The notes under the pieces: model-generated
Told to the model about the DNA's origin: nothing
Database searches by the model: none
The model's input: the letters and a program-made list of their open reading frames with translations, nothing else
Translations under genes and position numbers: made by a program
Shown: piece after piece, positions 6,881 through 29,115 of the stretch
Numbering within the stretch: the first letter of the stretch is position 1
Layout of the letters: each line of letters begins with the position of its first letter
IMG/VR virus record: IMGVR_UViG_3300023199_000204
Span: 248,001-312,000 of that record
DNA length: 64,000 nt
Direction: 5' to 3' (one strand)

Positions 6881-6940
6881 GTCCTGTTGAAGTTTTAAAA
6901 TGTCGACATAATTCTTATAAAATAATAATGGTTAAAAGAT

Positions 6941-8324: not shown

Positions 8325-9766
8325 AAAAGGAATGTTAGAATGCTTATAAAAACACTGTTTAAAGATCCACATCAATTTGTTTTAAATATATTAAGAGATC
8401 ATAATTTTAAAGAAATGGATAAAAGTGATGCTCATAGCTACCAAAATTTTAAATGTTGTAGATCATTTAAAAAAAATAATATAATCGTTAAAATATGTGA
8501 TGCTGTTAAAGAACTTTCTATATTGGCAGTGGCAGAGGGCAAATGTAGTGAGTATGTTTCTTACTTTAATAGGAACTTTTATTCAAACGTAAAGCAGTTA
8601 ATAAATAAATATGAAAATTTTTAATATAAACTCTAACGCCTCTATTTTAGGATATAATAAAGCGGTGTCTATCGCAAAACAATACGGATTTTATTTGTCT
8701 TCTAAGACATTGTGTTGTAATACTTTCGTTAATATTTATACTTATGAAATAGTTAAAATCTGCGAAGGTTTTGTCGAAGCATTCTTTATAAATCCTAGAA
8801 ATGATCAATATTATCTCGATGATAAAGATTCATTTAAATCTTTTGAAGAAGAACTTAAAAAAAGAGGATTTGTAAATGAAAGTTAGTTCGCTTAATACAT
8901 CTTCTTTTTATCCATCTATAACATCTAATGGTATAAAAAATACTAGAAGACTATTAACTAGCTTTGGTTTTAAAAGAAATGAATACGTATTAATGGTAAG
9001 TGGTGAAGAGTGGGAGTATAACTATCGCGGCCTGAGAAAATTTGCGTTTCTATATTATAATCCTCTTATAGAATTGAAAATTATGAAGCGTACATTCTAC
9101 ATTATGAAATTTGAAGAAAGATTAAATCTTGTTAAGTATTTAAGAGAAAGTTATGTTTAGATATTCAAATAAAGAACTTAAGTCTTTAATTGAAACAGAA
9201 GGGTTTTGGAAAATAATTGGTCTAATAGATATAGATACAATATCTAATAATAAAGTTAAGAAACTTATTTTAAAAATGAAAAAGCTTGAAAATAATATTT
9301 ATAGAAAACTGAATGAAAATTAAAAAAATAGAAGCAGATAAGCAAATTATAATAGATGTTAGAAAAAAATTATTAAGTCTTGGTTTAAAGAGAATTAAAA
9401 ATTCCCCCAGCGAGCCTCCTTTTTCAAAAGAAATATGGGAAGGTGGAATTTATCTTTATAAAGATCCACCAGATCTTCTGGTATTTGAAGCTCTATTTTA
9501 TAGAATTAATATACCAGAAGAACTACAACAAGCTTATATTCATTTAGAAAAGGTGTTTAAATAATGAAAATTTATATTGTTAAAGATATAATAAAAATAT
9601 ATGGAAAATCATTTAATACAATTAAAAATTTCACTAGTAAAAAAATGGAAAATTTATAAAGGAACTCTTAAATTAATATGACATTTAGAATTGGAGATAT
9701 ATATCGAACAGAATCTATTCCAAGATATATTGTCGTCTCTTCAGAGTTCTGTTTAATATAGAATAT

Positions 9767-10153
9767 ATGAACGAATCTATCGCACCATTTGAAATCAATA
9801 AGCCACGCTGGAGATTTGATCATTGGCACGCAAATTATGAAGTTTCGATAAATAGATATTTATATACTGTTAAAGATTTTGATAAAAGAAGAGAACTTAA
9901 AATAAAAGCAAAGGAACTTCTTGGTGAAAGATTATATCTTTATCACTTTGACAATAATTTTTATAAACAGAGTGTTAAATATGAAAAATTTGCTTTGGAA
10001 TTTAATTCCAAATTTAATAATCTTAAAATAGATTATAATATTATATCAGAAGAATATGAAGTAAAAAGAAAGTTTTCATTGAAGAATGAAGATGAAGTAA
10101 ATGTTTTTTCAGACTATCTGTCTGAATTTGGTGTAATAGAAGAGGCAGAATAA
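9767..10153 (+). CDS. hypothetical protein, YLxEFG paralog family member 1
   Basis: C-terminal DYLSEFGVIEE shared with 12245 and 12603. Confidence 0.65.
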   Translation: MNESIAPFEINKPRWRFDHWHANYEVSINRYLYTVKDFDKRRELKIKAKELLGERLYLYHFDNNFYKQSVKYEKFALEFNSKFNNLKIDYNIISEEYEVKRKFSLKNEDEVNVFSDYLSEFGVIEEAE

Positions 10154-10366
10154 AAGGAAGTAAGTATGGAATTATCACCATTAGAGCTAGTATTTTTAGT
10201 ACCTCTTATTGTTGCGGTGGGTTGGTTCATAGTAACTAATTTATTTATGGGAGGTTTCGCAGATTACAAAACAAGGAGTACATCATTTTATCGAAGAGGC
10301 TTAGGAGGCAGTATTAGAAGGACTCCTGCTCCTGTTAATGGAGGATAGAATAAAAATATTCATATT

Positions 10367-10753
10367 ATGACAAAAGAAGAACTAGCAAATAAGTATTTAG
10401 AATTAATGGAATTTAAAAACAATATGACAGTTAATTTAATTAATATGCTCCTTGTAATTCACGAAGGCAATTTAAGCTCTGAAGGTGCGGAGAAAATAAT
10501 TAAGTTAGCTAATATTGATTCTTTGGTAAATAGATTTAAGAATCACGTATTAGAGACTTTTACAGAGGAAGAAATAGAAAAATTAGTAAAATTTTCTGAG
10601 GACCCTTTGTATAAAAAAGTAATTTCAAATGAGTATCTTGAATCATTACAAAAACTTTCTGTAGATTGGTGGATTAATCAATACTCAGGATTAAATGATG
10701 AAGTAAATAAGATCTTAATGGAAGAAAGGAGCAACAAAATATGTTTGAATTAG
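10367..10753 (+). CDS. hypothetical helical protein (DUF2059-like)
   Basis: ETFTEEEIEKLVKFSEDPLYKK resembles the DUF2059 motif. Confidence 0.5.
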   Translation: MTKEELANKYLELMEFKNNMTVNLINMLLVIHEGNLSSEGAEKIIKLANIDSLVNRFKNHVLETFTEEEIEKLVKFSEDPLYKKVISNEYLESLQKLSVDWWINQYSGLNDEVNKILMEERSNKICLN

Positions 10754-11284
10754 TTGTAGGAACGGGGCTACTTGCTGCAGGATGGTTTGCCAGAAAGTAT
10801 TTCTCTGAAAAGAAAAAACGCAGATAATGTTTCCTCATACTATATTCTTATCGGAAGATAGAAATGTTGATGATGATATAGATCTCATTTTTAATATTGT
10901 GAATAACTTGGTAAAGGCAGAGCAATGGGACACGATTAGTGATTATTTTCAAGCTATAGTTGAAAAAGATTATTACAAACAAACTCAAACTCACGGTGCT
11001 CAATTGATGGCTTTTTTGGCAACAACAAGAATGTTTAAAAAAGAAATAGGTCATTGGAGAAAAGTTATGAAGAAGAAAGTAAAAAAGCTTTTTAAAAAAG
11101 AAAATAAAAATATAACAGAAAAGATTGTTGAAGAAATATAATGCCCATTGTTGAAAATCAGCCAGTAGGTCAATGTGAAATTTGTGATAAATTGTGGCTA
11201 TATGAAACCTTTTCTGAAAAATGCGAAGTGTGTATGGGAGTATTTTGTAAAACACATCTTAAAAAGAGGAAGATACTATAACGA

Positions 11285-11932
11285 ATGAGGAAAAATATGA
11301 AGCTGGTTTTAGGGTCGCGGAATCCAGGTAAATTGGTAGAGCTTAAAGAACTCTTCAATATTGAGGGATTAGAATTGGTTCCCATAACTGATTTTAATGT
11401 TCCAGACGTTGAGGAAACAGGCTCAACATTTGCTTCTAATGCTGTATTAAAGGCAAGATATGCTGCTGTTAAAACAGGGATTCCTGCTATTGCTGATGAT
11501 TCTGGTATGGAAATATATGTTCTAAACGATTTTCCAGGAATATATTCAGCAAGATGTGCTGGTGAAGACGCAACTGATGAAGAAAAAAAGAATTTTATTT
11601 TGGAAAAAATGAAAGGCATTCAAGACAGGAAAGCACGATTTGTGTGTGTGATGGCGTATTGTGAACCTGACAATAATATTCCAACTTATTTTACTGGAAC
11701 TGTAGAAGGAGAAATTCTAACTTTTGCTTTAGGGAAATCAAAGCCAAATCTTCAATATGATAGTATTTTTTATTATGAGCCCGCTAAGCAATCATTTGCT
11801 ATGATGCCAGAAGATGAAAAAAATAAAGTTAGTCATAGAAGCAGAGCGTCAAAAAGTATGAGAAAGTTTCTTGAAGAGAAAATTAAATCTAAATTTAGGA
11901 GAGAATACTCCATTATTAATGAAGAGGGCTAA
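11285..11932 (+). CDS. rdgB: RdgB/HAM1 non-canonical purine NTP pyrophosphatase (ITPase)
   Basis: GSRNPGK, EETGSTFASNAVLKA, ADDSG, PGIYSAR, KNKVSHRSRA. Confidence 0.93.
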   Translation: MRKNMKLVLGSRNPGKLVELKELFNIEGLELVPITDFNVPDVEETGSTFASNAVLKARYAAVKTGIPAIADDSGMEIYVLNDFPGIYSARCAGEDATDEEKKNFILEKMKGIQDRKARFVCVMAYCEPDNNIPTYFTGTVEGEILTFALGKSKPNLQYDSIFYYEPAKQSFAMMPEDEKNKVSHRSRASKSMRKFLEEKIKSKFRREYSIINEEG

Positions 11933-12244
11933 ATGGATATTATATCAGATATTGTTGTGTGTTATTAATCATTAGCAGTACTAGCTAATATTATTAGTTT
12001 TTTTTGGATGGACTGGTGGTGATGTTTCTAACCAAGCTTTAGCAAAAATATTTTTGGGGACCTTGTGTCCATTAGTAGGTTTGTATTTTGTTTGGAAAGT
12101 AGCATTTTCAGAATGATATATGTATTAGGAACTATATTCTTTTTACTTTTTATAGTTATGATAATAGCTTTAATTAAGCTAAGTATTGATTAATATGAAA
12201 TATAATGAAAGATTTAATTTCACAGGGCATATACTAAATTTTAA

Positions 12245-12637
12245 TTGTTTTTTTCTACGCAAAAAAAAGAAAAAAAAATGGAAGGAATGGACAGATATAA
12301 TCAGGTTTATTCTTCTTTTTTTAAGAAGGATGAATACATAATTTTTTCAGCTTATTGCTCAAACTACAAGTATTTAGCTATTAAATGTGATGAAGAACTT
12401 ACTAAAATTAGTGAAGAAGAAGTTAGTTGTAATAAATGTAAAAAATTTTATCACATATATGATAGATTGCTAACCGCTCGTAATAATTATAAAAATGTTA
12501 AAATAATTTATGATAAAAATAAGGAAAGATATACTTTAAGACTTTCCTATAAGGCTAAGGATTTTGATAGAATTGAAGTTCTTCTAGATTATTTAAAGGA
12601 GTTTGGGGCAATTGAAGAAAAAAAATCCAACTCATAA
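12245..12637 (+). CDS. hypothetical protein, YLxEFG paralog family member 2
   Basis: VSCNKC and DYLKEFGAIEE; true start probably the ATG at 12278. Confidence 0.6.
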   Translation: MFFSTQKKEKKMEGMDRYNQVYSSFFKKDEYIIFSAYCSNYKYLAIKCDEELTKISEEEVSCNKCKKFYHIYDRLLTARNNYKNVKIIYDKNKERYTLRLSYKAKDFDRIEVLLDYLKEFGAIEEKKSNS

Positions 12638-12995
12638 AGAGTTTGTAAAGAAAATTAAGGATGTTCATCTCCTTAATAGAACAAGGAAATTTCAAGCGAA
12701 CTGGCGATATCCACAGAATTGTAAATATAAAACATTTTGTAATAAGAAATATCTTGTCCCAAATTCATCTTTAAGCACACAGGATGTCGACAAAGTCACT
12801 TGTAAAGACTGTCTTAAATATATAGATAAGTTTAATTTTGTGGAAGAAATAATTAAAAATTATAAAAATGTTCGCTTTGATAATAAGAAGGGAGATGAAT
12901 ATAGTATTATTGTTAAATGTAAATTTAAAAATATGGAAAATGTTAGAGTATTTGTAGATTATCTGTCTGATTTCGGAGTGTTAGAAGTAAAGTAA
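12603..12995 (+). CDS. hypothetical protein, YLxEFG paralog family member 3
   Basis: VTCKDC and DYLSDFGVLEV. Confidence 0.6.
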   Translation: MGQLKKKNPTHKEFVKKIKDVHLLNRTRKFQANWRYPQNCKYKTFCNKKYLVPNSSLSTQDVDKVTCKDCLKYIDKFNFVEEIIKNYKNVRFDNKKGDEYSIIVKCKFKNMENVRVFVDYLSDFGVLEVK

Positions 12996-13001
12996 ATATT
13001 A

Positions 13002-13076
13002 CTGGGCGTGTTCTAGTCTGGCTAAGATTCCTCATTTGGAATGAGGAGATCGTAGGTTCAAATCCTGCCGCCCAGA
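13002..13076 (+). tRNA. tRNA-Pro(UGG)
   Basis: CTGGGCG/CGCCCAG, CCTCA-TTTGGAA-TGAGG. Confidence 0.92.
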
Positions 13077-13110
13077 TTAAAGTAGCTTGTTTAACAAGTA
13101 GAGGTTAGTT

Positions 13111-13500
13111 ATGAAAACATTGGTAGTTAATGTTCGCGACAAAAACTATGATGTATATATTGGTAGAGAAGGCCGAGGCGAAACAGGTTACTTTGGTAAT
13201 CCTGTAATAAGAGGTAAGGTCTGCACAGTGTGTGGAAATGTACATCCCAATAGAGGCAGCACGCTGCCTTGTTATGAGAAATACGCACGCGAGCGACTAT
13301 CTGATGATGCTGATTTTTGTTCTGCCGTACGCAAACTTAGGGGCAGAGCGCTCGGATGTTTTTGTGCGGGTAACAAGGTTCTAACAAAAGACGACCACCC
13401 TCACTGTTGCCATGGTCAGGTATTAGCAGAATTAGCCGAGGAGCTAGAGGCTGCTGTAGAAAAGTTTGTAGAACTTGGTGGACTTGATGAAACACCTTAA
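13111..13500 (+). CDS. DUF4326-like protein
   Basis: VVNV..YDVYIGR..YFGNP..LRGRALGCFC..CHGQVL. Confidence 0.75.
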   Translation: MKTLVVNVRDKNYDVYIGREGRGETGYFGNPVIRGKVCTVCGNVHPNRGSTLPCYEKYARERLSDDADFCSAVRKLRGRALGCFCAGNKVLTKDDHPHCCHGQVLAELAEELEAAVEKFVELGGLDETP

Positions 13501-13954
13501 GGAGATTATATGGAAAAAGTAGAACTAGACCTACCAAAGCTGGTTGAAGCTGATGATTATCACGAATTTAAATGGCTAGAAAAACATCTTCAAAAGTTAA
13601 ATAAAGAATTATATGTTGAAGAATTGACTCCATATTATGAAACAATAGACTATATAGCTATCATCTATTATAAAAACAAAGATGCTAAATATCATCAGTT
13701 AAAAGCAAGTGTTGAAATGGAAGTTAATAGTGGATAAATTTATTTTAAAAAATTTGAAAGAAATTAAAAGATCTTTAATAAAGGACCAAGAATTTACTAT
13801 AAAAGTATCCGAAGAAGCAATTCACCTAATAGATGAAATTTTAAAAAATAAGGCATTGTTCAAAAGACAAACAAGAAAATTGCTAAATAGACTTGAAAAA
13901 TTAGATAATTGTGTAGATATTGGAGAAATGATATATTATCAAGATTATAGTTAA

Positions 13955-13979
13955 AAATCTATCAATTAAATTATATTAG
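13955..13979 (+). promoter_or_regulatory. putative phage promoter in front of leader 1
   Basis: 22/25 identical to 686-710. Confidence 0.5.
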
Positions 13980-13986
13980 GATTACT

Positions 13987-14082
13987 ATGATTGTTTTTAA
14001 TCTAAACCTATCAAATTTAGAACACGCCCATAGCGAAGAGCACGGACTCTCTTCAGCGGCAGGGAGAGGTGTAACTATTTAA
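13987..14082 (+). CDS. leader peptide 1 (MIVFNLNLSNLEHAHSEEHGLSSAAGRGVTI)
   Basis: 31-codon ORF after AGGA, immediately upstream of alternative hairpins and a terminator. Confidence 0.65.
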   Translation: MIVFNLNLSNLEHAHSEEHGLSSAAGRGVTI

Positions 14083-14084
14083 TA

Positions 14085-14140
14085 GGTCTGGGATTATAAT
14101 ATTTTACGAAGCCTGGGCCATTTGGTCTGGGCTTTTTTTA
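14085..14140 (+). terminator. attenuator 1: intrinsic terminator 14109-14139 with competing antiterminator segment 14085-14092
   Basis: AAGCCTGGGCC-ATTT-GGTCTGGGCTT plus T7; GGTCTGGG occurs both upstream and as the terminator 3' strand. Confidence 0.75.
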
Positions 14141-14158
14141 TTATGAGAAAGAGGCTAA

Positions 14159-14620
14159 ATGAATAAATTAAGTACCGCTACCAAAATGGATGAAGTTATG
14201 ATAAAACTCCTTGACGGCATAACTTTTGAAGGAACAGATATAACGAACGATCAATATAAAAATTTACTCAAATACTATGAATATGATTTAGATCATTCAG
14301 ATACTATGTCTAAACTGTCTGCTAAATTGACAGATGAAAAATATGAAAAAGAATGTAGCGAATGGGAAGAAGAAGAAGCAAGTAATAATATATATTATAA
14401 TGTTCCTAAACAAAAAAAACCTGATATAGAGAATATTTTAAAAGAAACAAAAAGGTTTTATGAGGCAGGAAATATAAAAAATATAATGAGAGAGGCGAGT
14501 CACGACGGACGTAGAATTATGGCTTTCATATCAAAGTTTCTTGAAAAAGGAGAAGACCCTGTTAAATTAATAGCAGAGTGTATGAGTCAAGTGGGATTTG
14601 ATGTTCAGTTAGAAGAGTAA
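14159..14620 (+). CDS. hypothetical protein
   Basis: 153-aa ORF with RBS GAGG, first gene after attenuator 1. Confidence 0.6.
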   Translation: MNKLSTATKMDEVMIKLLDGITFEGTDITNDQYKNLLKYYEYDLDHSDTMSKLSAKLTDEKYEKECSEWEEEEASNNIYYNVPKQKKPDIENILKETKRFYEAGNIKNIMREASHDGRRIMAFISKFLEKGEDPVKLIAECMSQVGFDVQLEE

Positions 14621-14627
14621 ATTAAAA

Positions 14628-14702
14628 GCTCCTGAGAGCCATTAGGAAGGCTATCAGATTTCCAATCTGACTATCGTGCGGGTTCGAATCCCGTCAGGAG
14701 CT
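14628..14702 (+). tRNA. tRNA-Gly(UCC)
   Basis: GCTCCTG/CAGGAGC, TCAGA-TTTCCAA-TCTGA. Confidence 0.88.
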
Positions 14703-14706
14703 TTAT

Positions 14707-14778
14707 GGTGGATATGGTGTAATGGTAGCACAAAACACTGTGAATGTTTAGGAGAGGGTTCGTATCCCTCTATCCACC
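14707..14778 (+). tRNA. tRNA-His(GUG) with encoded G-1
   Basis: G+GTGGATA/TATCCAC+C, AAACA-CTGTGAA-TGTTT. Confidence 0.9.
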
Positions 14779-14829
14779 CTCGTTGAAGTCCCTTTGACTA
14801 TAAACGTAAGGAGTGACGACCTTACATTT

Positions 14830-14903
14830 GCGACTGTAGCTCAATTTGGTAGAGCACTACATTGCCAATGTAGAGGTTGTGGGTTCAAGTCCCATCAGTT
14901 GCT
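14830..14903 (+). tRNA. tRNA-Gly(GCC)
   Basis: GCGACTG/CAGTTGC, CTACA-TTGCCAA-TGTAG. Confidence 0.92.
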
Positions 14904-14967
14904 TAAAGTTGTGAGTTTGAACACAGGCTCTTTACCCTTAAAATCCTAAGGGGCTCATAACTTTTTT

Positions 14968-15057
14968 GGGAGAGTGGCAGAGTCTGGCTTATTGCGTTGG
15001 TTTTGAAAATCAAAGAGTACTGAAAGGTCTCCGGGGGTTCAGATCCCTCCTCTTCCG
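14968..15057 (+). tRNA. tRNA-Ser(UGA)
   Basis: GGGAGAG/CTCTTCC, TTGGT-TTTGAAA-ATCAA, long variable arm. Confidence 0.85.
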
Positions 15058-15062
15058 TTTAT

Positions 15063-15136
15063 GCGGGTGTAACTTAATTTGGTAGAGTGTGAGATTTCCA
15101 ATCTTAAGATTGCGAGTTCGAGTCTCGTCTCCCGCT
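15063..15136 (+). tRNA. tRNA-Gly(UCC), second copy
   Basis: GCGGGTG/CTCCCGC (one mismatch), TGAGA-TTTCCAA-TCTTA. Confidence 0.82.
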
Positions 15137-16782
15137 TTTAATAAGGAGGAAGCTAATGGCAGATATAGAGTGTTCAAAATGGTCTGGTTTTTATAATGTT
15201 CCCGAAGGAAGGTGGGATACTAATCATCCTAAATGGGAAAAATATTATGGTGGTAAATCAACGAATGTTAATTCTCCAGATTATGATCCAAAGTATTCTG
15301 ACGAAACAGGAGCTTCTTGGTTGAGACGTTTTAAACAGAGGATAAAATGAATCGAAAAGGACATAAAAGGTTAGATGTTAAAGTAAGAACTGGTGGTAAT
15401 GGACTATGGTCAAGGGTAGCAAAAGAAGTAATTATTACTAAAATAGAATGGGAAATGTCTGACATTTTAGATGAAACTTATGTGAAACTATATCTTGATC
15501 CCGAAACTTGGAATCAAAAAGAAGATGGTTTAATTTATACAGATGATACTTTTGAAGCAAATATGCGAAATATATTATGTAATATGAAATGTGAAAGAAA
15601 ACTTATTGATTTGCCTTGGGAGAAACTTTCATATACTGAACAAGGAATGCAGGGAGGACATAAATTTTGTTGTCCAGATGACTGTAATTCTTGTCCCATA
15701 TATGTAAGTATGATATTAGGATCTTGGTAGGAGAGCAAATGAAGCTTAAAGAAAGGCCACAAGAGCCGACAGAAAAAATAGTATATGAAAAACTTAAGAA
15801 GAATATATATTCATACTACGAATATGTTAAAAAAAGAAGACCTTGAAGATGATGAAGAATTTGCCATAGAAGATTGGAATGATGACGATGACCGCCTAAT
15901 TGGCGGATGGGTCACAAGAAATGTTAGTGTATCTTTACAAGATATTGTTGATTTCTTTATAGAAAGAAACATAGATCTCAATGAAGTTTATCCATATTAT
16001 GAAGAAGAAGTTAGAGTAGATGATGCTTTTATGCTAGGATATGCTGAGCCATTTTTTCATTATACGAAAGAAGAAGCTGATGAAGATTTTGAAAAAAGAG
16101 TTAAGCAATATAAGAAAGATTTAAAAAACTATAAGAAATGGTATAATGAAAATAAAGAAGAAATAAAAGCAGAAAAGGCAAGGATAAGAGAGGAAAAGAA
16201 AAGATTAAAAGAAGAAGAAAAGCAGAATAAAAAATTAGAAAAGTTAAAGAAAAAAAAAATAAATTATAAAAGAGCTTATGGAGTTAGAAAAATAGTATGT
16301 CAAATCACTGGGATCCTTTAAAGGATATTACAATCTTTGCGTTTGAATTATCTCAAAATTCACAAGTAATGAATTTGCTAACTGATAAAGGAATTATTAA
16401 AATTCACGCTGACGGGGACTGATGTGCTTTTGCGTGGATAGAAGAATTCTCCACACCAGCACTGGGGTTCCCAGCCAAAATAATTGAAATGAAAGAGGGA
16501 ACTTATTTTGCTGGAATTAATGAAGATTATGAAGTAACTGATGTTTGTTTTTATAACTTGGAAACTGACAGAGGAACTTTCGCGATGGAATTGAGAGTAT
16601 CTCATAACGGTTATTATGGAGGCTCCCTATGTATATTAGAGGCTCCAAAAGATAATGGTTATAAAGATCTTACAGAAGAAGACAAAGTATTAATTGATGG
16701 TATGTGGTCAAAGCAAATATCTGATGAAGAATTTAATGATTTGTTGAAAAGAACAGATTGGAAAATAAAGGATAAAGAAAGT

Positions 16783-17045
16783 GAAAATAACGGAAGATGA
16801 AGCTTGGGGAAATTTTAGAAGGTAAAGATTTAATAGTAAAACAATATGAGTATGTGAGAAGATAGAGTGTTTTATTTTCAATAGTTTTTAAAAGAGATGA
16901 TAAGTTTTATAGTTTTGCTTGGGATCAGTCAGCAATTAAATATCAAGATGGACAGGAGCAATTACATATTGATCATGAAGGAATGATAGGTTGTAGAGAA
17001 GTGGAACCATATGAAAAAACTATGTATAGAGTTAAAAAATGAATT
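16783..17045 (+). pseudogene. disrupted hypothetical ORF (frameshift plus in-frame TAG at 16863)
   Basis: Reads MKITEDEAW/EILEGKDLIVKQYEYVRR*SVYFSIVFKRDDKFY. Confidence 0.45.
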
Positions 17046-17049
17046 AAAC

Positions 17050-17123
17050 GGTCCCATAGTCTAATGGTTTATGATTTCGCTCTTTCAAAGCGAAGGTGTT
17101 GGGTTCAATTCCCACTGGGATCA
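17050..17123 (+). tRNA. tRNA-Glu(UUC)
   Basis: GGTCCCA/TGGGATC, TCGCT-CTTTCAA-AGCGA. Confidence 0.9.
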
Positions 17124-17309
17124 AAGGAAAATATTAAAGTTAAAGAAAAAAAAGAAGCAATAAAATTAAGAAAAAAAAAGGAAAATCCGTTAATTATATA
17201 TCTAAAAAATTAAAAGTAGGAAAAGGAAGCGTATCTACTTGGTGTAGAGATATTATTTTAACTGAAGAACAAAAAAGAAATCTATTAAAAAATAGTAATA
17301 AATAAAAAA

Positions 17310-17383
17310 GGCCCTATCGTCTAATTGGTTTAGGATACGGCGTTCTCAATGCTGAGATCGGAGTTCAAATCTCCGTAGGGTTA
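17310..17383 (+). tRNA. tRNA-Glu(CUC)
   Basis: GGCCCTA/TAGGGTT, CGGCG-TTCTCAA-TGCTG. Confidence 0.88.
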
Positions 17384-18361
17384 ATAAGGAAATACAATGT
17401 TTTTTAATTTCTTGAATAAATTGTTTAGAAAGACTAGTCCCAATGTTAAAAAGTGTGGTATTTATTTATGTGATTATGAAATACCAAATACTTTTAATAG
17501 AAATTACTGTGATTTTCATAGGGAAAATGGATTTAATGGGGAGCCACTAGTATGTTCAGTATGTAATAAATGTGCGAGGATTAATTCAAATGGAACCAAT
17601 TATTGCGATCTCTGCTATTCATTAAAGAATAAAGAGGAAATAGTTAAAACAATTGTTAAATTATGGAATCAAAACATTAAAAACATATCATCTTGGGAAG
17701 ATATGGCGAGGATGGCAGTAGAAGAGTTTAGTTGAAAGGATTTAAATTAAATGTACAGAACTAATGCTTTTAAAAATGATGACAAGTCTATTGAGGATTT
17801 TATTAGGAGGGCCCTAAGGACAAATTTTAATCGCTGGGAAAGAATAGATATTCAACCAATTGGCTCATTCTTTCATCATAAAGTTTTTACACTATCTAAA
17901 ACAGAAGAGGATTCAAAAGTAAATATTTTAAGTTTTGTGTTTAGAAAATATTATACAAGACCTGGATATAAAATAATAATGTTATTGGGGGAAAGAAAGA
18001 ACCTTACTATATTTATAGAGATAAGAGAAGTAAAAATAGATTTGAAATTCCAAAGAAATTACATAAACAGATAATATCTTTTTATAATGATTTTATTAAT
18101 TGGGCTGATGAACAAAAAGAAATGAAAAGATTAAAAGAATTTGAAAAGCTATATGAGAAAATATAAGGAAATAATGAAAATTAAAGATGAATTTGATTTA
18201 GCTAGAGTTATTCATGATATTTTGATGGAAGATTATATTATTTGGAACACGTTTAATTTGGTGAGTAGCAAAGGTAAAGAAATATATTTAGATAAAGATG
18301 ATGTAGAGTATGTAATTACGATAAATAAAAATGTTGTTTCAAAAGTATAATGTGGAGTTAA

Positions 18362-19114
18362 ATGTCTAAAAAGAGAGAAGATATAGATAAAAAGAAAGAT
18401 ATAATAATTTCTATGCTTAAATCAGGAATTTCTAAGGCAGAAGTCTGTAGATATCTTAAGTGTAAATATATAACTCTAAAATCTAGATTGGATAAATGGG
18501 GATGTAACATAAAAAATACGCATAGAAAAAGTTTCCCGAGACTCAATAATAGAAAACACGTATCTGAATATTTACATCACGACAGTAATATTAATTCTTT
18601 TAAGCTCAAAAAAAAATTATGGCAGGATGGTTATAAAGCAAAATTTTGTGAAGAGTGTGGAATATATAAATGGCGTGGAAAACCAGCACCTTTAGAGTTA
18701 GATCATACTGATGGTTACAAATTTAATAATTGTATAGAAAATTTAAAGATTCTGTGTGCAAACTGTCACGCTAAAAAATCAACTAATGGTGGGAAAAATA
18801 AAGGTACTTATAAAATTAGCTCCGTCTCTCAATTGGCAGAAGAAACGCGCTTAGACCGCGTACGGTGTGAGTTCGAATATCACCGGAGCTATAATAAAAA
18901 ATCTAAAAATAAATGTATTGATTGTAAAAAAGAAATAAAAAAAACTAGTAAAAGGTGTAAGAAATGCTTTTCTCTCAGTTCAAGAAAAATAGAATGGCCT
19001 CCTGTAGAAAAAATACTAGAAATACTAAAAGAGGAAAATTATACAAAGCTTGCTAAAAGATTAGGAGTGACTGATAACGCAATTAGAAACTATTTAAAAA
19101 GAAACAATAAATAG
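18362..19114 (+). CDS. HTH-HNH endonuclease reading through an embedded tRNA into a Zn-ribbon/HTH tail
   Basis: N-terminal HTH; CEEC..LELDHTDG..NN..ENLKILCANCH; C-terminal CIDC..CKKC and HTH. Confidence 0.8.
   Translation: MSKKREDIDKKKDIIISMLKSGISKAEVCRYLKCKYITLKSRLDKWGCNIKNTHRKSFPRLNNRKHVSEYLHHDSNINSFKLKKKLWQDGYKAKFCEECGIYKWRGKPAPLELDHTDGYKFNNCIENLKILCANCHAKKSTNGGKNKGTYKISSVSQLAEETRLDRVRCEFEYHRSYNKKSKNKCIDCKKEIKKTSKRCKKCFSLSSRKIEWPPVEKILEILKEENYTKLAKRLGVTDNAIRNYLKRNNK
18818..18891 (+). tRNA. tRNA with UAG (Leu) anticodon, class I body, inside the HNH ORF
   Basis: AGCTCCG/CGGAGCT, ACGCG-CTTAGAC-CGCGT, GTGAG-TTCGAAT-ATCAC; no long variable arm. Confidence 0.65.
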
Positions 19115-19481
19115 ATGGAACCAACTATAAAAAGTGGAACAGAGCTAAAAGAACAAGTTTAAAATGCTAGTATTATGATTACATAACATATTTTAAGGAA
19201 AAAAAATGAAAGTTTATGTTTTAAAATGGGAAGATAATAGAAATAATAATTGGAATAAATTTAACTTATTTGAAACAAGAAAGTCAGCCAATGAAAAGGT
19301 TAGGGAATATCTTACAAATATTTATATAGAAGAGGAAATGGAAGGCTTTGACACAAATAGTCCAACGGAAGAGAAATTAAGAAAGAAGGCATCAAAAATA
19401 TCCTTAAAAGAATTAAGTAAGAAAGTTGGATGTTTATGTTATTATGAAATCATTAGAACAGAAGTCGAAAAATAGGAGAGA

Positions 19482-19881
19482 AATGGGAACTAGATCGATT
19501 ACCATTGTTAAAGAAAAAGAACTTAAAAGTAAGAATAATTATTTAGTAATGTATAGACAAATGGATGGTCATCCTGAAACTCACGGCTACGAGCTTGCCA
19601 GCTTTTTAAATGGAATGAAGATAGTAAATGGAATTCCATATGGAGAGGACACTTCTCAAATCGCCAATGGAATGGATTGTTTGGCAGCTCAGATAGTTGC
19701 TTATTTTAAAGACGGTCCTGGTAGTATATATTTATGTCCCTCAAATGAGTTACAACACGAGTGTTTTGATTATTATGTTTATTTAAACAAGGGCAACAAA
19801 ATAATGATTAAGTGTATGAGTGGAGACGAAACATTGTTTAAAGGCACGCCAAAACAATATTTAAAATGGGTAAATAAATAA
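19482..19881 (+). CDS. conserved-looking phage hypothetical protein (MGTRS..YRQxDGxP motif)
   Basis: RBS AGGAGAG before the ATG; the ORF-track start at 19426 is probably too early. Confidence 0.55.
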
Positions 19882-20090
19882 TGATAGAAGCTCTTTTTGT
19901 CGTAGAAGGTTCGCAGGCTTATAATGCTGGTGTTAGGAAAGGTGATAAAATACTTGCCTTTAATGATGTTGTTGTTAAGTCTTTAATAGATTATATAAGA
20001 GCGAAGAGAAATTCAGGCGAATATGAAACCATTCTCGTTAGTAGGTATGGAGAACAAAAGTATTTTAGATGGAAAAAGAATAGAGGGTAG
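19881..20090 (+). CDS. stand-alone PDZ-like domain protein
   Basis: VVEGSQAYNAGVRKGDKILAFND. Confidence 0.7.
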   Translation: MIEALFVVEGSQAYNAGVRKGDKILAFNDVVVKSLIDYIRAKRNSGEYETILVSRYGEQKYFRWKKNRG

Positions 20091-20171
20091 GCATATGTTG
20101 GTTTGATGCGACCGCCTGCTAAGCGGTTGGCTCCGTGATGGAGTCCGCGAGTTCGATTCTCGTGCCCTCTG
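20082..20171 (+). tRNA. tRNA-Ser(GCU)
   Basis: AGAGGGT/GCCCTCT, ACCGC-CTGCTAA-GCGGT, long variable arm. Confidence 0.87.
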
Positions 20172-20206
20172 CTTAAAGGAGAAAGAATGAGATTTTGAAT
20201 ATCTTG

Positions 20207-20296
20207 GGAAGATAGGTAGATATGGTTTGCTACGTCAGTTTGGAAAACTGATCTGTCTTGTAAAAGACAGTGCGGGTTCGAATCCCGTGTCTTCCG
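20207..20296 (+). tRNA. tRNA-Ser(GGA)
   Basis: GGAAGAT/GTCTTCC, TCAGT-TTGGAAA-ACTGA, long variable arm. Confidence 0.9.
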
Positions 20297-20964
20297 TTGT
20301 TTAAAAGGAGAGACTTATGTTTAGAAAGTTTAGAAGCATAGTTTTGATATTTTTTATTCCATTCGTTCTGATTTTTGAAGGATTACGAAAAGTTTTAAAA
20401 CATTTGAGAAGATTTCTTTCTTTACTTGGACACGAAAGAATAATTAGTCATTATAAAAGAAGCAAGTTTAATCCATATGAAGAAGCCAATAAGATGGGAT
20501 ATTATATATGCTTAGATCCTTATGAAGCAGAAAAATATATAACAATTCCATTACCAAATCCTAGTAGTATTAATGATGTTAAATCATATTGGGCTAAAAG
20601 TTTTATAGATTATCCAAAAGAAAGAGCACCTAAGGGCAAACAATGGAAACTTTTTACTGGAAAAAATGAAGGTGTTAATTTTGCTGATGGAATGCCAGAA
20701 TGGAGATTAGTTGATGAAAGTAATTAATTCAGGATATTTAAAATATATTCAAAACTTTTATAATTATTTGTCTAAAATAAGGGCAAAAAGTGTAGATGTT
20801 AGTGGATCAGTTTATAAAGAAATTCGAAATCATTTAGTTGATGTTTTTAATCCCTGTTCTTCATTATCGATAATCAGAAAACATTCGGACCCTACACGCA
20901 TTTTTGTTGGTCATTTAATTTTAGAAAATAATGAGGCCGCGGAGTTTTATGTTAAAAGGAAAAA

Positions 20965-22131
20965 ATGAAATATATAATATTAAGTGATCTTCATTTAGGG
21001 CACAAAGGGATCCAGAATAATGGATTTGTATCTTTACTTTCTAATATTCCAGAGGGTGCGGATGGATATGGCAAGAGTAAGTTAGACAGTTTTTCTACAG
21101 CCATAAAAGATTTTTGTGGAGAAGATAAAGCAGTTTTGATTTTAAATGGTGATTTATTAGAGCTTTCATTAGCGACAATGAGAGATGCTCTTGACAGCTT
21201 TTTAGATGTGATTGCTACAATAAAAGACAATGTAAGTAAAATAATATTAATTGTTGGAAATCACGATCATCATATTTGGTCTTTACATTCAGAGTATAGC
21301 AGGTCATTAAATCATTTACTTTCTGGAGATTTGCCAGCAGTGGGGACGGCTTATAGGACAACGATATTTGCTGAGAAAGCACATCTTTTAGATCCGCTTA
21401 TTAAAAAACAAATTGACGAAAACATTGACTTTAAAGTATCATATCCTTCTTTACGGCTCCATTTAAATAATGGAGATGAACCAGTTTATTGTTATATTAC
21501 ACACGGTCATTTATTGAGTGGATTATATAATTTAACTTCAAGAATACTAAAACCTTTTGCTATTGGTAGAGAAACAGAATATACAATTGCCGAAGTTAAT
21601 TCTGCCTTAATTGAGTTTATGTATTGGTCAGCAGGAGAAATGGGCGATGGGATGGGAGTTGATGGGATCCTTGAGGCAATGTACACGGACTTAGAAAAGG
21701 GAAAGAGTTCTAAAATGAAGGAACTTCTTGTTAATTTATCTAATACATTGTTTCCAGATGGAGTTTTATCGTTTGTCCCAGATGTTTTGGAAAGAAAAAT
21801 ATTTAGTTGGCTAGCAGAAAAGATGTCCAAGAAACTATCAAAGGATAGAGATAAGCCCATATCCTCAGTTGATAGATACGCTTCTTTGGAAGATACTAGA
21901 AATTACGTTAATGATTGGACTAACAATGTTGTTGATTTATCACCTCCATATAAAAGAATGATTTTTGTTTCTGGTCATACGCATCGTGCTGACGAGTTTA
22001 ATATTAATGAAACTGTTAAATATTATAACACTGGATCGTGGTTATTAGAGCCAGCCCATCCTGAACCAGAGTCAAGACTCCTTTTTATAGAGGACGGAGA
22101 AGAACTGAAAATTGAGTTTAAGGTAATATAA
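20965..22131 (+). CDS. calcineurin-like metallophosphoesterase
   Basis: SDLHLG, NGDLLE, GNHDH, THGH, GHTH, NTGSW. Confidence 0.9.
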   Translation: MKYIILSDLHLGHKGIQNNGFVSLLSNIPEGADGYGKSKLDSFSTAIKDFCGEDKAVLILNGDLLELSLATMRDALDSFLDVIATIKDNVSKIILIVGNHDHHIWSLHSEYSRSLNHLLSGDLPAVGTAYRTTIFAEKAHLLDPLIKKQIDENIDFKVSYPSLRLHLNNGDEPVYCYITHGHLLSGLYNLTSRILKPFAIGRETEYTIAEVNSALIEFMYWSAGEMGDGMGVDGILEAMYTDLEKGKSSKMKELLVNLSNTLFPDGVLSFVPDVLERKIFSWLAEKMSKKLSKDRDKPISSVDRYASLEDTRNYVNDWTNNVVDLSPPYKRMIFVSGHTHRADEFNINETVKYYNTGSWLLEPAHPEPESRLLFIEDGEELKIEFKVI

Positions 22132-22904
22132 AATGAACAACTTTGATTATAAAAAAGCGTTTGAGTGGATATTAAAGCACGGAGCATATATTAAACTTCC
22201 CTATAAAGAAGAACTTGATGACTGGTATAGAGAGATTGGATGTCCAACTTTAGGAATAATAAATGGAAAATATACTGTTAGATCTATTAGAAATATGTAT
22301 GGAAAGAATTTTGATTCATTGAAAGAGGCATTAGAAGAGTTTATTCCTAATTGTGATAATATAGGTGCTATACAATGCTATACTGAAAATGAGTTAGGGA
22401 TTAACTCTGAAGAAAATTGGGATGAAATGGTAGAGGCAATTAAAAAAGAAAAAGAAAAAAGAGATGCTAACAAAAGCAGAAATGATGATTGTTAGGAAAT
22501 ATAATATTGGAGTAATATGGGACACTGGTGCTACGAAATAGTAGATAATTATAATGCTTTAATAGCAAGGTGCGAAGATATATTTTGGTTTTGGTTGAGC
22601 AAAAAAATGTATCTTGATATAGATGAAAAAGATTATTATTGTGCTCATATAAATATTTCTTTTGATAAAAATAATGATTTAATCAAATGTGAGTATAAAG
22701 GAAAAAGATGGGAGTTCCCATCATCTTATATAGATAATGATAAATGGATGACTGAATTAGAATTTCAAATAAAAGAAGAAAATATTGAAGAACAAATTGT
22801 AAATATTAAAAATCGCTTTGCTAATGAAAATGAAGAAAAGAAACTTTATTTAAAATTAAAAGAGAAATATGAATGATAGATATAAGAAAGTAAATAACAA
22901 AATA

Positions 22905-22977
22905 GGGGATGTAGTTTAGTTGGGAAAACCTCTGATTTGCGATCAGAAGAGCGTCGGTTCGAGTCCGACCATCTCCA
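22905..22977 (+). tRNA. tRNA-Ala(UGC)
   Basis: GGGGATG/CATCTCC with G3:U70, TCTGA-TTTGCGA-TCAGA. Confidence 0.9.
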
Positions 22978-23008
22978 ATAATTTCAAATTTATTAGGAGG
23001 ATAGGAAT

Positions 23009-23325
23009 ATGCGAAAAGCAAAAAGAAAAGTTTTTTAAAAATATCTGGAAAGACGACAGACGGAAAGTTAGTATATAGTGGTCTTTATGAACTTAGGAAT
23101 ACTTACGGAATTCCATTAGATATAAGTATTCCATTTATTCACGATAATGATGGAATTCCAGACTGGTTTAATATATATGAAGAGGCTTTAAAATATAACC
23201 TTCCATATGATAGATTAAGAAATAATTTAAGTGTTATAATAGTTGATCTATATAGTGAAGACATATGTAATTCAATATTATTTAAACTTGATAAAGTTAA
23301 TGAAATTGGATTAGTTAAAATAAAA
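23009..23325 (+). pseudogene. frameshifted small ORF with AlaRS-like LRNTYGIPLD motif between two tRNA-Ala genes
   Basis: ATG 23009 with RBS AGGAGG is out of frame with the open frame from about 23032 (FLKISGKTTDGKLVYSGLYELRNTYGIPLDISIP...). Confidence 0.5.
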
Positions 23326-23399
23326 GGGGCTGTAGCTCAATTGGGAGATCAACTCTCTGGCAGAGAGAAGGTTTGTGAGTTCGAGTCTCATCAGCTCCA
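23326..23399 (+). tRNA. tRNA-Ala(GGC)
   Basis: GGGGCTG/CAGCTCC with G3:U70, loop CT-GGC-AG. Confidence 0.82.
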
Positions 23400-27241: not shown

Positions 27242-28844
27242 GTAATTAAATGAAGAAAGCTTCAGGATTATATGATGTTAATACAATTATTAATATATCA
27301 TCAGAAAATTTAATGAATGACGGATTTGAAGAGTGGGTGCCCTCTCGCCCAATTGGAACATTTGGTTTCTTGTCGAGATGTAAAAAAGCTTGGATGGTTT
27401 TTACAGGGAAGGCAGATGCTCTTATATGGCCTAAAGGACAGTGATGAGAAAGATTAATAAAGTTTGCGGTAGCATTTTAAAACAGTTAGAAATACCAGAT
27501 AATCTTGAATATTGTTGTGAATTTATAGAGCAACAACTTAATTATGATTGTAAGCAGCACGGTTCGGGATGTCCAGATATAGGAATTAGATTAACAAAGA
27601 ATATTGAATTAATGCTTATAGCACCAAATGCTGAGTATATATGTAATTATTGTCCAAGTTGTGGAAAAAAATGGTCTAAGGAGAGATAATGTTTTATGAT
27701 TTTAGGCAGAATAATTCTGGAGGTTCTTTTAAAGTAACTGATAGTGTTGGACATTATGTAATAATAGAAGCTGATAATGCTCAAGAAGCTAACGAAAAAG
27801 CAGAGCAAGTGGGCATATATTTTGATGGTTGTTCAACTGGAAAAGATTGTAATTGTTGTGGAGACAGATGGTATCCACAATGGGATTCCGATGGTAGTGA
27901 AGAACCATCCATTTATGGAGAAAATATAGAAGAATATAAGAATTCAATAAGATATTCTGTTTCAGATGAAGAAGTAATTTTTGTTTACTATAAAGGCGGA
28001 CACTCTAAAAAAATAGTCATTGATGTTAAATCAGAAAAATAAAAGACCGAAAAGGCTTTAAGAGATGAGGCAGATAAAACTTGGGCAGCTTTTGCTGGGA
28101 TAAGCTATTGTTATAAAAATCCTGAAAGAATGTATCAAGCTGATTTTTACGATAAATATTATGATGAGTCAGGCAATAGAAGTATTGAGAAAAAAGGACT
28201 TGTAGTTAATAATGATTATAATTATCTCACATTTTCTTCTGATAATAAAGAAGAAGTGGAAGATTTTATAAAAGGGTATAGAACATATGCTGAGGCAGTT
28301 AGAGAGGCTATAATTAATTTATCAGATTTGAACAGAGATGAGTTCAGTAGCAAGGGAGAGAAAGCTTTAAAGGATATGCTTTTGAATGCACTGAAAAATG
28401 TAATGTCGACATATTCATAATATAAAAACTAAGAGCTGGTATGAAAAGATACAATATAAAAAAACAATTAGCTTACTATGAAATTTCATTTTTAAACAAC
28501 AAGAATCTTAATGATTTGATAAATGAATTCAATTCATTAAAAAAGAAGTTCGGAAGAAAATGGAATCTTTCAATCAAGTTGGAAGACTCTTATGATAGTT
28601 ATGAGTCCGAGCCTTCATATAATAGCTTTTGCGTTTATGGTGAAAGATTAGAAACTATAAAAGAAGCAAAGAAGAGAATTAAAGAGGAAGAGGAATATAA
28701 AGCTTTAAGAAAAGAGCAAGCAAGGGCTCGGGCAAAGGAAAGAATAAAGGCTGAAAAGGAAACTTATTTAAGACTTAGGAAAAAATTTGAAAAAAAAAAT
28801 CTTAATTTATATTAATAATAATATATTAGGACAGGAATATAATT

Positions 28845-28931: not shown

Positions 28932-28950
28932 AATACCACAAATATTGGAG

Positions 28951-29101: not shown

Positions 29102-29115
29102 TGGAAATAAAATAA

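Follow-up and report, generated by a model that had tools for sequence, protein, structure and literature searches.

In ribosome-mediated transcription attenuators of amino-acid operons (trpL, hisL, pheL and especially the multivalent thrL and ilvL leaders of enterobacteria), a short translated ORF precedes an intrinsic terminator. The transcript can form mutually exclusive 1:2, 2:3 and 3:4 pairings, region 2 is occluded by a ribosome at the stop codon, and the regulatory codons report on the availability of the matching charged tRNA. The pheM leader of pheST and other attenuators or autoregulators of translation-apparatus genes (compare the thrS and ribosomal-protein leaders cited in PMC2965389) control a gene of the translation machinery by how well a leader with cognate codons is translated. 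T-box riboswitches read tRNA status through codon-anticodon recognition and a terminator/antiterminator switch. Phage tRNA clusters, such as those of T4 and T5, have been interpreted as compensation for host tRNA loss, including loss through tRNA-targeting defences, or for codon bias. Here, a 64,000-nt window of a huge phage genome of roughly 316 kb was analyzed, in which a short ORF and an intrinsic terminator precede each of two tRNA arrays, and each ORF is written in codons read by the tRNAs behind it.

The first element was proposed by a sequence-only reading, and its observation was confirmed. All features described are on the plus strand. Leader ORF 1 (13987-14082; ATG at 13987, TAA at 14080-14082) comprises 31 codons and encodes MIVFNLNLSNLEHAHSEEHGLSSAAGRGVTI. 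It was not annotated by gene callers and had no Pfam or PHROG match. A motif shared with the second leader, TATATTAGGA (13972-13981), contains an AGGA Shine-Dalgarno-like site (13978-13981) 5 nt before the ATG. This motif is common upstream of plus-strand genes and therefore represents ribosome-binding-site context rather than a specific promoter. A promoter at 13955-13986, where the sequence-only reading saw a promoter-like motif, was not supported; this motif was no better than chance (58 sites found against 57 expected in the region). The sequence GGTCTGGG occurs at 14085-14092 and again at 14125-14132, the second copy lying in the 3' arm of an intrinsic terminator (14108-14139). This terminator consists of a 12-pair stem at 14108-14135 (5' arm 14108-14119, loop, 3' arm 14124-14135) followed by a run of 7 T, with a dG of -17 to -18 kcal/mol. 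The first ORF behind it (14159-14620, 153 aa) belongs to no known family and has one 34%-identical homologue in another 318-kb viral contig. Its start codon is only 20 nt downstream of the terminator, leaving no room for a promoter.

tRNA array 1 (14627-23399) contains 12 genes with 11 distinct anticodons: Gly UCC (two copies), His GUG, Gly GCC, Ser UGA, Glu UUC, Glu CUC, an atypical short "Leu" tRNA with anticodon UAG (18818-18891), Ser GCU, Ser GGA, Ala UGC and Ala GGC. Two of these were missed by the default filters of Rfam but scored above threshold in a closer search. Small ORFs and an HNH endonuclease are interspersed. Under strict wobble rules, 18 of the 31 leader codons were matched by these tRNAs, all 11 anticodons were covered, and 15 of 17 consecutive codons (codons 12-28, GAA...GGT, 14020-14070) were matched, only CTC and AGA in this run being unmatched.

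In order to assess whether this match exceeds chance, several null models were applied. Against genome codon usage, P was about 2e-4 for codons matched and for anticodons covered, and 1e-5 for both together; dropping the atypical UAG tRNA left a P(both) of 7e-5. None of 11,800 real ORF windows of the same length reached the observed values. Dinucleotide shuffles of the leader itself gave P = 5e-5 for codons matched and P = 0.002 for anticodons covered, and the ORF ranked first of 420 small ORFs in six frames. The other two frames of the same DNA matched only 6 and 5 codons. The latter result bears on the possibility that the GC-rich leader regions are untranslated structured RNAs, either small RNAs or riboregulators binding a protein or tRNAs directly in the manner of a T-box, with an incidental open frame. 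The regions do fold well (z = -2.6 for 13960-14145), and GC-rich islands in an AT-rich genome often mark RNA genes. However, no Rfam family, T-box included, came near its threshold, only the open frame matches the tRNA set, and a Shine-Dalgarno-like site sits at the right spacing in both leaders. We therefore consider this reading improbable.

A second, paralogous element was found at 28845-29027, directly before tRNA-Cys. It was identified from its terminator and its similarity to leader 1 (the shared upstream motif and the start xxFNLxL), not from its codons. Leader ORF 2 (28845-28964) comprises 39 codons and encodes MSIFNLRLKLKSIQITDQVDQKDRCVRQYNTTNIGGSSV. Its terminator (28992-29027, dG -20 kcal/mol), which is also the end of unit 1, is followed after 3 nt by tRNA-Cys. 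tRNA array 2 (29030-53616) contains Cys GCA, Asn GUU (two copies), Lys CUU, Leu CAA, Ile GAU (two copies), Thr GGU, Arg ACG, Val UAC, Ser CGA, Val GAC, Met/Ile CAU and Thr UGU, as well as an odd tRNA-like gene (29116-29251) and an RNA ligase fused to a tRNA-binding domain (51892-53211). The tRNA-Cys and the odd gene are, like the UAG tRNA of array 1, atypical or weak. Leader 2 covers 11 of the 12 anticodons of array 2, including the rare codons CGC (twice), ACC, ATC, GTG and TGT (P(coverage) = 0.0017, P(both) = 6e-4), and 0 of 11,128 real windows reached that coverage. Its overall match is modest (18 of 39 codons, P = 0.02), and it also holds 10 central codons (Gln x4, Asp x3, Lys AAA, Tyr, Arg AGA) for which no tRNA gene was found in the window or in the 4.5 kb beyond it. 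Leader 1 against array 2 and leader 2 against array 1 were at chance level (P = 0.45-0.97).

The two terminators and a third one (53920-53965, at 53954; dG -21 to -22 kcal/mol), which ends unit 2 and is not preceded by a leader-like ORF, are the only strong plus-strand terminators bounding the arrays, so the arrays are naturally delimited. It could be argued that these are ordinary operon ends, that the small ORFs are ordinary small genes or chance ORFs without annotation or relatives, and that the codon match is coincidence; the modest match of leader 2 and the indistinct antiterminator of leader 1 (see below) would fit this view. However, the joint probability of the two own-array matches is about 1e-8 whereas the crossed pairs sit at chance, and the spacing behind both terminators leaves no room for a promoter, so that the downstream genes can only be reached by read-through. 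Moreover, the two peptides share only their first residues, so no conserved protein product is evident. Together with the recurrence of the pattern in other phages (see below), this makes coincidence very unlikely.

Both leaders can form 1:2, 2:3 and 3:4 pairings with region 2 in the footprint of a ribosome at the stop codon, and the sequences differ between the two paralogues but the pairings are kept. In minimum-free-energy folds of leader 1, region 1 (13998-14011) pairs with region 2 (14084-14096, containing GGTCTGGG) when no ribosome is present. Region 2 starts 2-3 nt after the stop codon, so a terminating ribosome would cover it, and it pairs with either region 1 or the 5' arm of the terminator; by this geometry, every stall site in the run of codons 12-28 would leave it free. 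The antiterminator pairing of leader 1 is real (hairpin -10.9 kcal/mol) but short (8 bp, 3 of them G-U). It was not stronger than in shuffles if allowed to lie anywhere (P = 0.40), and only marginal when required to lie in the ribosome shadow of the stop codon (P = 0.08 by shuffles, 0.024 against genomic windows). In leader 2, region 1 (28861-28869, ACGCUUGAA; duplex against shuffles P = 0.027) and region 2 (28949-28960, GGCUCAAGCG), which is formed by the last codons before the stop and pairs with 28996-29005 (P = 0.008 and 0.003), gave significant pairings.

The sequence-only reading had asked whether leader codons change with tRNA content in related phages. The only relatives of this phage in the databases were 99.99% identical copies, which are not informative for its own leaders, but this expectation held in an independent family. 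The same scan found the same design in three unrelated phage groups. The clearest is that of cultured Caulobacter and Brevundimonas phages (CcrColossus family). In CcrColossus, 12 of 13 consecutive codons were matched and 7 of 7 anticodons covered, 0 of 13,874 windows reached that run of matched codons, and the regulatory codons lie in region 1, as in trp and his. Homologues were found in 50 records. Across 9 aligned phages, the frame stays open and 10 of 14 regulatory positions vary, yet 125 of 125 residues of the regulatory segment lie in {Y,F,V,I,Q,N,R}, the seven amino acids of the downstream tRNAs. The rest of the peptide scored 33 of 126, against a background of 0.32. Substitutions are constrained by amino-acid/tRNA identity rather than by base pairing alone, which also speaks against an untranslated RNA. 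In LR756504.1, leader B has 14 of 27 codons for Lys, Gln and Tyr and sits before Tyr, Gln and Lys tRNAs (P = 2.6e-5; 0 of 6,006 windows). In the LR756511.1 family, a 35-codon ORF with 19 different amino acids and 31 different codons (P = 0.003) precedes a terminator at the head of an array of more than 34 tRNAs and is conserved in three contigs. Bacillus phage G and T5, run through the same scan as negative controls, gave nothing.

These results suggest that the window holds two paralogous ribosome-dependent transcription attenuators of the trp/his type (13987-14139 and 28845-29027), each gating one tRNA-rich transcription unit, and we hold this explanation with moderate confidence. In this model, during fluent translation the ribosome would reach the stop codon and cover region 2, the terminator would form and transcription would end before the tRNA genes. 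During slow translation, the ribosome would lag on the central codons, region 2 would stay free and pair with the 5' arm of the terminator, and RNA polymerase would read through into the tRNA genes. This would constitute negative feedback on decoding capacity: any one of 11-12 tRNA species running short, whether through low supply early in infection, host shut-off, starvation or cleavage by a host nuclease, would turn on the whole replacement set, and once those tRNAs are plentiful the unit would shut itself off. The analysis itself established the sequence anatomy, the codon-to-anticodon match and its specificity for the array's own leader, the alternative pairings and the recurrence of the design in unrelated phages, whereas translation of the leaders, control of read-through, the direction of the switch and its physiological trigger are inferred from sequence alone. 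In both leaders region 1 lies upstream of most sensor codons, and a ribosome stalled late in the run would leave region 1 free unless trailing ribosomes cover it, so the direction and sensitivity of the switch remain uncertain. Furthermore, intrinsic terminators may behave differently if the phage uses its own polymerase.

The interpretation of the sequence-only reading, a multi-codon sensor of host tRNA depletion through anticodon nuclease attack or starvation that switches on the replacement tRNAs, was partly supported: the anatomy fits a leader-peptide attenuator with codons matched to the tRNAs it precedes, but a trigger by anticodon nucleases was not supported; plain negative feedback on phage tRNA supply or amino-acid starvation fit equally well. 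Its statement that such control has not been described agrees with full-text literature searches, which returned no prior description. It is also possible, though unlikely, that the same mechanism senses not tRNA abundance but aminoacylation or overall elongation rate, or that it works in the opposite direction, with fluent translation promoting read-through as in pyrBI-type coupling. Classical attenuators sense charged tRNA, so starvation would act on these leaders too. The upstream position of region 1 would also fit, and in the LR756511.1 family the stop codon lies before region 1, making the direction of the switch ambiguous. However, in the window the stop codons lie upstream of the terminators with region 2 in the shadow of the ribosome, which is trp-type and not pyrBI-type geometry, and the regulatory codons of CcrColossus lie in region 1 exactly as in trp and his. 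Moreover, matching codons to the unit's own tRNAs, isoacceptor by isoacceptor, has no obvious purpose for a general speed sensor.

Compared with T-box riboswitches, which bind uncharged tRNA directly without a ribosome, carry a Stem I specifier loop and a conserved T-box sequence, and control synthetase and amino-acid genes, the present elements share the terminator/antiterminator switch that reads tRNA status, but no T-box model matches them. The pheM-type systems control an aminoacyl-tRNA synthetase or a ribosomal protein for a single amino acid, and none is known to control tRNA genes. As in known phage tRNA clusters, the tRNA genes are interspersed with small ORFs and homing endonucleases, and an RNA ligase with a tRNA-binding domain lies in the array, but leader-peptide control has not been described for those clusters. 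The leaders of the CcrColossus/phiCbK-like phages, LR756504.1 and the LR756511.1 family, undescribed as far as we could find, have the same architecture and the same codon-to-downstream-tRNA match but share no sequence similarity with those of the window. CcrColossus and LR756504.1 use compact runs of regulatory codons before small clusters, whereas the leaders of the window and of LR756511.1 sample many tRNAs once each before large dispersed arrays. Finally, the elements share with the trp, his, phe, thr and ilv leaders the short ORF (here with inferred translation), the terminator, the mutually exclusive pairings and the position of region 2 at the stop codon, and several amino acids would be sensed at once as in thr and ilv. 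They differ in that the regulated genes are tRNA genes rather than biosynthetic enzymes, so that the sensed molecule would be the product itself, in that the sensor is not a run of one or two codons but roughly one codon per tRNA species, 11-12 species and separate isoacceptors included, and in that the element is viral and duplicated, with each copy tuned to its own array.

The 64-kb window is AT-rich (about 30% GC), with genes lying almost entirely on the plus strand, and carries at least 27 tRNA genes and the start of a tmRNA. It is part of a 316,473-bp viral contig (IMGVR_UViG_3300023199_000204), and the same phage was found at 99.99% identity in two other samples. An alternative genetic code was considered but dropped, since the standard code already gives 82% coverage by long ORFs. 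Auxiliary genes are located upstream of the tRNA region (1025-13500), including a DHH/DHHA1 phosphoesterase with a homing-endonuclease repeat, adenylosuccinate synthetase, NifU-like and Ham1-like (ITPase) proteins, DUF4326 and a lone tRNA-Pro UGG (13002-13076). All of these sit outside the two putatively attenuated units.

The elements described in the sequence-only reading were all found in the DNA at the stated coordinates, so that its observation holds. A 31-codon ORF runs from 13987 to 14082, with an AGGA site 5 nt before the ATG. The sequence GGTCTGGG occurs at 14085-14092 and again inside the 3' arm of a 12-pair intrinsic terminator (14108-14135 plus seven U). Twelve tRNAs with 11 distinct anticodons follow between 14627 and 23399. 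Under strict wobble rules the ORF contains a codon for all 11 anticodons and matches at 18 of 31 codons and at 15 of 17 consecutive codons, only CTC and AGA failing in that run. In contrast, the promoter-like motif which had been noted before the ORF was not distinguishable from chance, and a sigma-70 promoter at 13955-13986 was therefore rejected. Among the tRNAs of this array, a 74-nt class-I tRNA with anticodon UAG (18818-18891, 42 bits in Rfam) lies inside a 250-codon open frame (18362-19114) whose ends hit HNH endonuclease and helix-turn-helix profiles. Either a homing-endonuclease frame runs through a tRNA gene or two ORFs are joined by chance, and a Leu tRNA without a long variable arm is unusual. 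The tRNA-Ser GGA (20207-20296) scored 45 bits on the selenocysteine tRNA model, just under its threshold of 47, which probably reflects only its long variable arm.

In order to assess whether the codon match could be a composition effect, leader 1 was compared with array 1 under several null models. Genome codon usage gave P of about 2e-4 per measure and 1e-5 for both measures (codons matched and anticodons covered) together, and none of 11,800 real ORF windows of the same length reached the observed values. Dinucleotide shuffles of the leader gave P = 5e-5 for codons matched and P = 0.002 for anticodons covered. The other two frames of the same DNA matched only 6 and 5 codons, and the ORF ranked first among all 420 small ORFs in six frames. 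Dropping the atypical UAG tRNA or allowing extended U34 wobble did not change the picture. These results demonstrated that the codon match is not a composition effect.

The whole window was scanned for strong terminators, which revealed only three on the plus strand in or around the tRNA region, at 14133, 29021 and 53954. The second is preceded by a 39-codon ORF (28845-28964) with AGGA 8 nt upstream of its ATG, which shares with leader 1 the upstream TATATTAGGA motif and the start xxFNLxL, and nothing else. tRNA-Cys begins 3 nt after the U-tract of this terminator. The 14 tRNAs between this terminator and the third carry 12 distinct anticodons, one of which, Lys CUU at 32115-32187, was found by Rfam only. 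Leader 2 has codons for 11 of those 12 anticodons, including rare ones (CGC twice, at 1.4 per thousand, as well as ACC, ATC and GTG), with P(coverage) = 0.0017 and P(both) = 6e-4, and none of 11,128 real windows reached that coverage. This is a genuine replicate, because the element was found from its terminator and not from its codons. The crossed comparisons served as an internal control: leader 1 against array 2 and leader 2 against array 1 were at chance (P = 0.45-0.97). The central parts of the two peptides use almost disjoint sets of amino acids, and the two paralogues diverge in line with their arrays. However, leader 2 contains ten central codons (Gln, Asp, Lys AAA, Tyr and Arg AGA) with no matching tRNA gene in the window or in the 4.5 kb beyond it. 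The missing Gln, Asp, Tyr and Lys-UUU tRNAs had been predicted to lie beyond the window's end, but only a phage-encoded tmRNA (63694-64000, complete at 10618-10972 of locus L006; 122 bits) and, 3.2 kb further on, tRNA-Leu AAG (L006 14157-14230) were found there. Both lie beyond terminator 3 and so outside the two units. The tRNA-Leu AAG would read the CTC codon that is unmatched in leader 1. A 136-nt tRNA-like gene (29116-29251) directly follows tRNA-Cys and has a 7-bp acceptor stem (GGATGCG/CGCATCC) and a good T arm. ARAGORN, when allowed introns, reads it as a GUG-anticodon tRNA with a long variable arm and a 50-nt insert at a non-canonical position, the insert itself containing a T-arm-like hairpin.

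Both leaders can form the three competing pairings of a classical attenuator. In leader 1, region 1 (13998-14011) pairs with region 2 (14084-14096), which can instead pair with the terminator's 5' arm (hairpin -10.9 kcal/mol), the terminator itself being -18 kcal/mol. In leader 2, ACGCUUGAA (28861-28869) pairs with GGCUCAAGCG (28949-28960), and the latter segment can instead pair with CGCUUGGGUC (28996-29005), giving -20.8 kcal/mol against -20.2 kcal/mol for the terminator. Region 2 starts 2-3 nt after the stop codon in leader 1 and ends 2 nt before the stop codon in leader 2, so that in both it lies within the footprint of a ribosome sitting at the stop codon. All sensor codons of leader 1 lie far enough upstream to leave region 2 free. 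The pairings of leader 2 were significant against shuffles (P = 0.003-0.03), whereas those of leader 1 were only marginal (P = 0.02-0.08 when position was required and 0.4 otherwise; 0.08-0.4 when shuffles alone are considered). Region 1 (codons 4-9 in leader 1 and 6-9 in leader 2) lies upstream of most sensor codons, and only early stalls or queued ribosomes would mask it. A late stall would need queued ribosomes to keep region 1 masked, so the direction and sensitivity of the switch remain inferences. The strongest structural argument is positional. The terminators, with stems of 12 and 13 pairs followed by U-tracts and dG of -17 to -20 kcal/mol, lie 20 nt before the next start codon and 3 nt before tRNA-Cys, respectively. 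This leaves no room for a promoter, and the downstream genes can only be expressed by read-through.

Searches for known families did not offer another identity for these regions. No T-box match was found at the gathering score or at E <= 10 in 13900-14200, nor at E <= 1 in 28750-29350. The best hits to other Rfam 15 models were terminator-driven, with 17-28 bits against thresholds of 39-80. Profile searches of Pfam and PHROGs with the leader peptides returned nothing below E = 0.05. A T-box, another Rfam family and a known small protein family were therefore dropped as explanations.

Relatives of the phage were searched by three protein-seeded scans and two DNA-pattern scans of IMG/VR, by a search of a 5.8-billion-protein collection with the first downstream ORF and by BLAST against GenBank phages. 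These returned the source contig itself, the 99.99%-identical copies in two other samples, and one distant contig (L002) with no tRNAs nearby. The one other pattern hit (L005) was the start of a long ORF and was rejected. Homologs of the RNA ligase encoded in unit 2 (50% identity) sit in bacterial contexts and did not lead to related phages. With no informative relative of this phage in these collections, covariation of leader codons with tRNA content, which the sequence-only reading had proposed as a test, was examined in an independent family instead.

An unbiased scan was written and applied to other tRNA-rich phages. It looks for a strong terminator, then a small ATG ORF ending within about 110 nt upstream, then the tRNAs downstream as far as the next terminator, and it recovers both window leaders. 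Bacillus phage G and T5, which were scanned as possible further examples, gave nothing and were kept as negative controls. In LR756511.1 (595 kb), the strongest terminator in the region (-24 to -27 kcal/mol) stands at the head of an array of more than 34 tRNAs. It is preceded by a 35-codon ORF with 19 different amino acids and 31 different codons (P = 0.003), covering 19 of 22 downstream anticodons (P about 0.02), and a GGCTCAGG / CCTGAGCC / GGCTCAGG relay overlaps the terminator. Homologs in a 373-kb IMG/VR contig and in a metagenome contig keep the frame open, including across a 3-nt indel, and keep the three repeats. No third-position substitution bias was detected in this family (differences by codon position 6, 8 and 9), so that only frame preservation supports translation there. 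In LR756511.1 the leader ORF stops at a TAG two codons before the TGA/TAA that is conserved in its two relatives (loci L011 11886-12095 in LR756511.1, L016 7780-7990 and L017 1-190), and that TGA is in frame. This could be a recent nonsense change or a hint of TAG read-through in that phage.

In LR756504.1 (636 kb), two tandem paralogous leader-terminator units are present (locus L019 18788-19245, reverse strand of about 401,500-402,000). Leader B (MKTKKQQYKQYQPQYKTVMGVYSLFGT) precedes Tyr, Tyr, Gln and four Lys tRNAs, and 14 of its 27 codons match the Tyr, Gln and Lys tRNAs (P = 2.6e-5; 0 of 6,006 windows). Leader A, the first of the two, precedes tRNA-Asp and carries three Asp codons where B has none, although three Asp codons in 35 is not itself significant (P = 0.38). 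In both, the conserved GGTGTATAT forms the antiterminator. Unusual tRNA-like sequences lie at L019 18421-18610 and 19250-19325.

In the cultured Caulobacter phage CcrColossus, an unannotated 31-codon ORF, MMTYRNNVRQIRVRQFN... (NC_019406.1 68148-68243; locus L020 26491-26586), precedes a terminator of -28.7 kcal/mol at record position about 68,300. Downstream lie a Tyr-like tRNA, then Phe, Val, Ile, Ile, Val, Gln, Gln, Asn, Arg and Arg tRNAs. Twelve of 13 consecutive codons match and 7 of 7 called anticodons are covered, each Val and each Gln isoacceptor having its own codon, and none of 13,874 windows reached that run of matched codons. Here the regulatory codons lie in region 1, exactly as in trp and his.

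The CcrColossus leader has homologs in 50 GenBank records (37 Caulobacter, 8 Brevundimonas, 2 Sphingobium, 1 Rhizobium and 2 listed as Bertelyvirus sp.), in which the 31-32-codon ORF with its textbook attenuator is unannotated or 'hypothetical'. A conserved Tyr-GUA tRNA-like sequence and a weak Phe-GAA tRNA between the terminator and tRNA-Val are unannotated in several records. Nine leaders from several genera were aligned. They share a conserved TTGAC box, an ORF of 31-32 codons that is always open and the [GA]CGGGCC motif repeated in region 2 and in the terminator's 3' arm. In the 13-14-residue regulatory segment, 10 of 14 positions differ between phages, yet all 125 residues belong to {Tyr, Phe, Val, Ile, Gln, Asn, Arg}, the amino acids of the downstream tRNA cluster. 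The rest of the peptide scored 33 of 126, against a background of 0.32. Exchanges such as N/F, R/V and I/N/Y make no sense for a folded protein but are exactly what a regulatory-codon model predicts.

The best explanation is a ribosome-dependent attenuator whose regulatory codons are those read by the tRNAs it gates, giving feedback control of phage tRNA supply. For the elements of the window this is held with fair, but not full, confidence, and the confidence is higher for the existence of the class. The leader anatomy, the codon match with its specificity for the own array, the alternative pairings and the recurrence in other phages are seen in the sequences, whereas translation of the leaders, dependence of read-through on that translation and on tRNA supply, the direction of the switch and its trigger are inferred. 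The interpretation given in the sequence-only reading is thus supported in part. Its further idea, that the trigger is host tRNA cleavage, is compatible with the data, but starvation sensing or plain homeostasis fit equally well. An RNA ligase fused to an N-terminal tRNA-binding (EMAP/Myf-like) domain (51892-53211) lies in unit 2. Its closest homologs (about 50% identity) are in cyanobacteria and myxobacteria, in non-phage contexts, and it is a likely tRNA-repair enzyme acquired from bacteria. Ordinary terminators with coincidental ORFs, or untranslated RNAs, are now unlikely.

A broader reading, which is about as likely as not, is that leader-peptide attenuation of tRNA genes may be a widespread, so far undescribed class of phage regulation, in which the leader ORF would 'taste' the decoding capacity for exactly the tRNAs it gates. 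In this view, small clusters (CcrColossus-like phages, LR756504.1) use a compact run of regulatory codons, whereas huge phages with dispersed arrays use a multi-codon sampler acting as an OR gate over 11-20 tRNA species. Because loss of any single cognate tRNA would open the gate, the element could double as a built-in alarm that would switch on replacement tRNAs, and the co-transcribed RNA ligase, when a host anticodon nuclease or host shut-off depletes tRNAs. Phage tRNA genes are usually treated as passively expressed cargo that offsets codon bias, host shut-off or tRNA-cleaving defences. If the leaders work as proposed, phages would measure decoding capacity directly and adjust tRNA supply by feedback, the ribosome being the sensor and the gene product itself the signal. 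The classic attenuation paradigm would extend from amino-acid biosynthesis to RNA genes, and it would be shown how a single leader can integrate a dozen inputs. It would also explain why strong terminators sit immediately upstream of tRNA arrays, and would give annotators a new feature to call, namely short, unannotated ORFs whose codons predict the downstream tRNA set. The occurrence of the same design in cultured Caulobacter and Brevundimonas phages makes the idea directly testable in a standard laboratory host, and the element, if it works as proposed, would offer a natural part for synthetic circuits responding to tRNA levels. Full-text literature searches found no description of attenuation control of tRNA genes in phages or bacteria, although older reports cannot be excluded because much subscription literature was outside the searched collection.

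Mechanistically, the proposed element works like the trp, his, thr and ilv leaders, the closest in spirit being the multivalent thr and ilv leaders and the pheM leader of pheST. It possesses the sequence-level defining features of that family, except that the placement of the regulatory codons relative to region 1 is atypical in the window's leaders. It is not a T-box and matches no Rfam family. What differs is the target, which is tRNA genes, so that the sensed molecule is the product itself. The sensor logic also differs, with one codon per tRNA species across 11-12 species.
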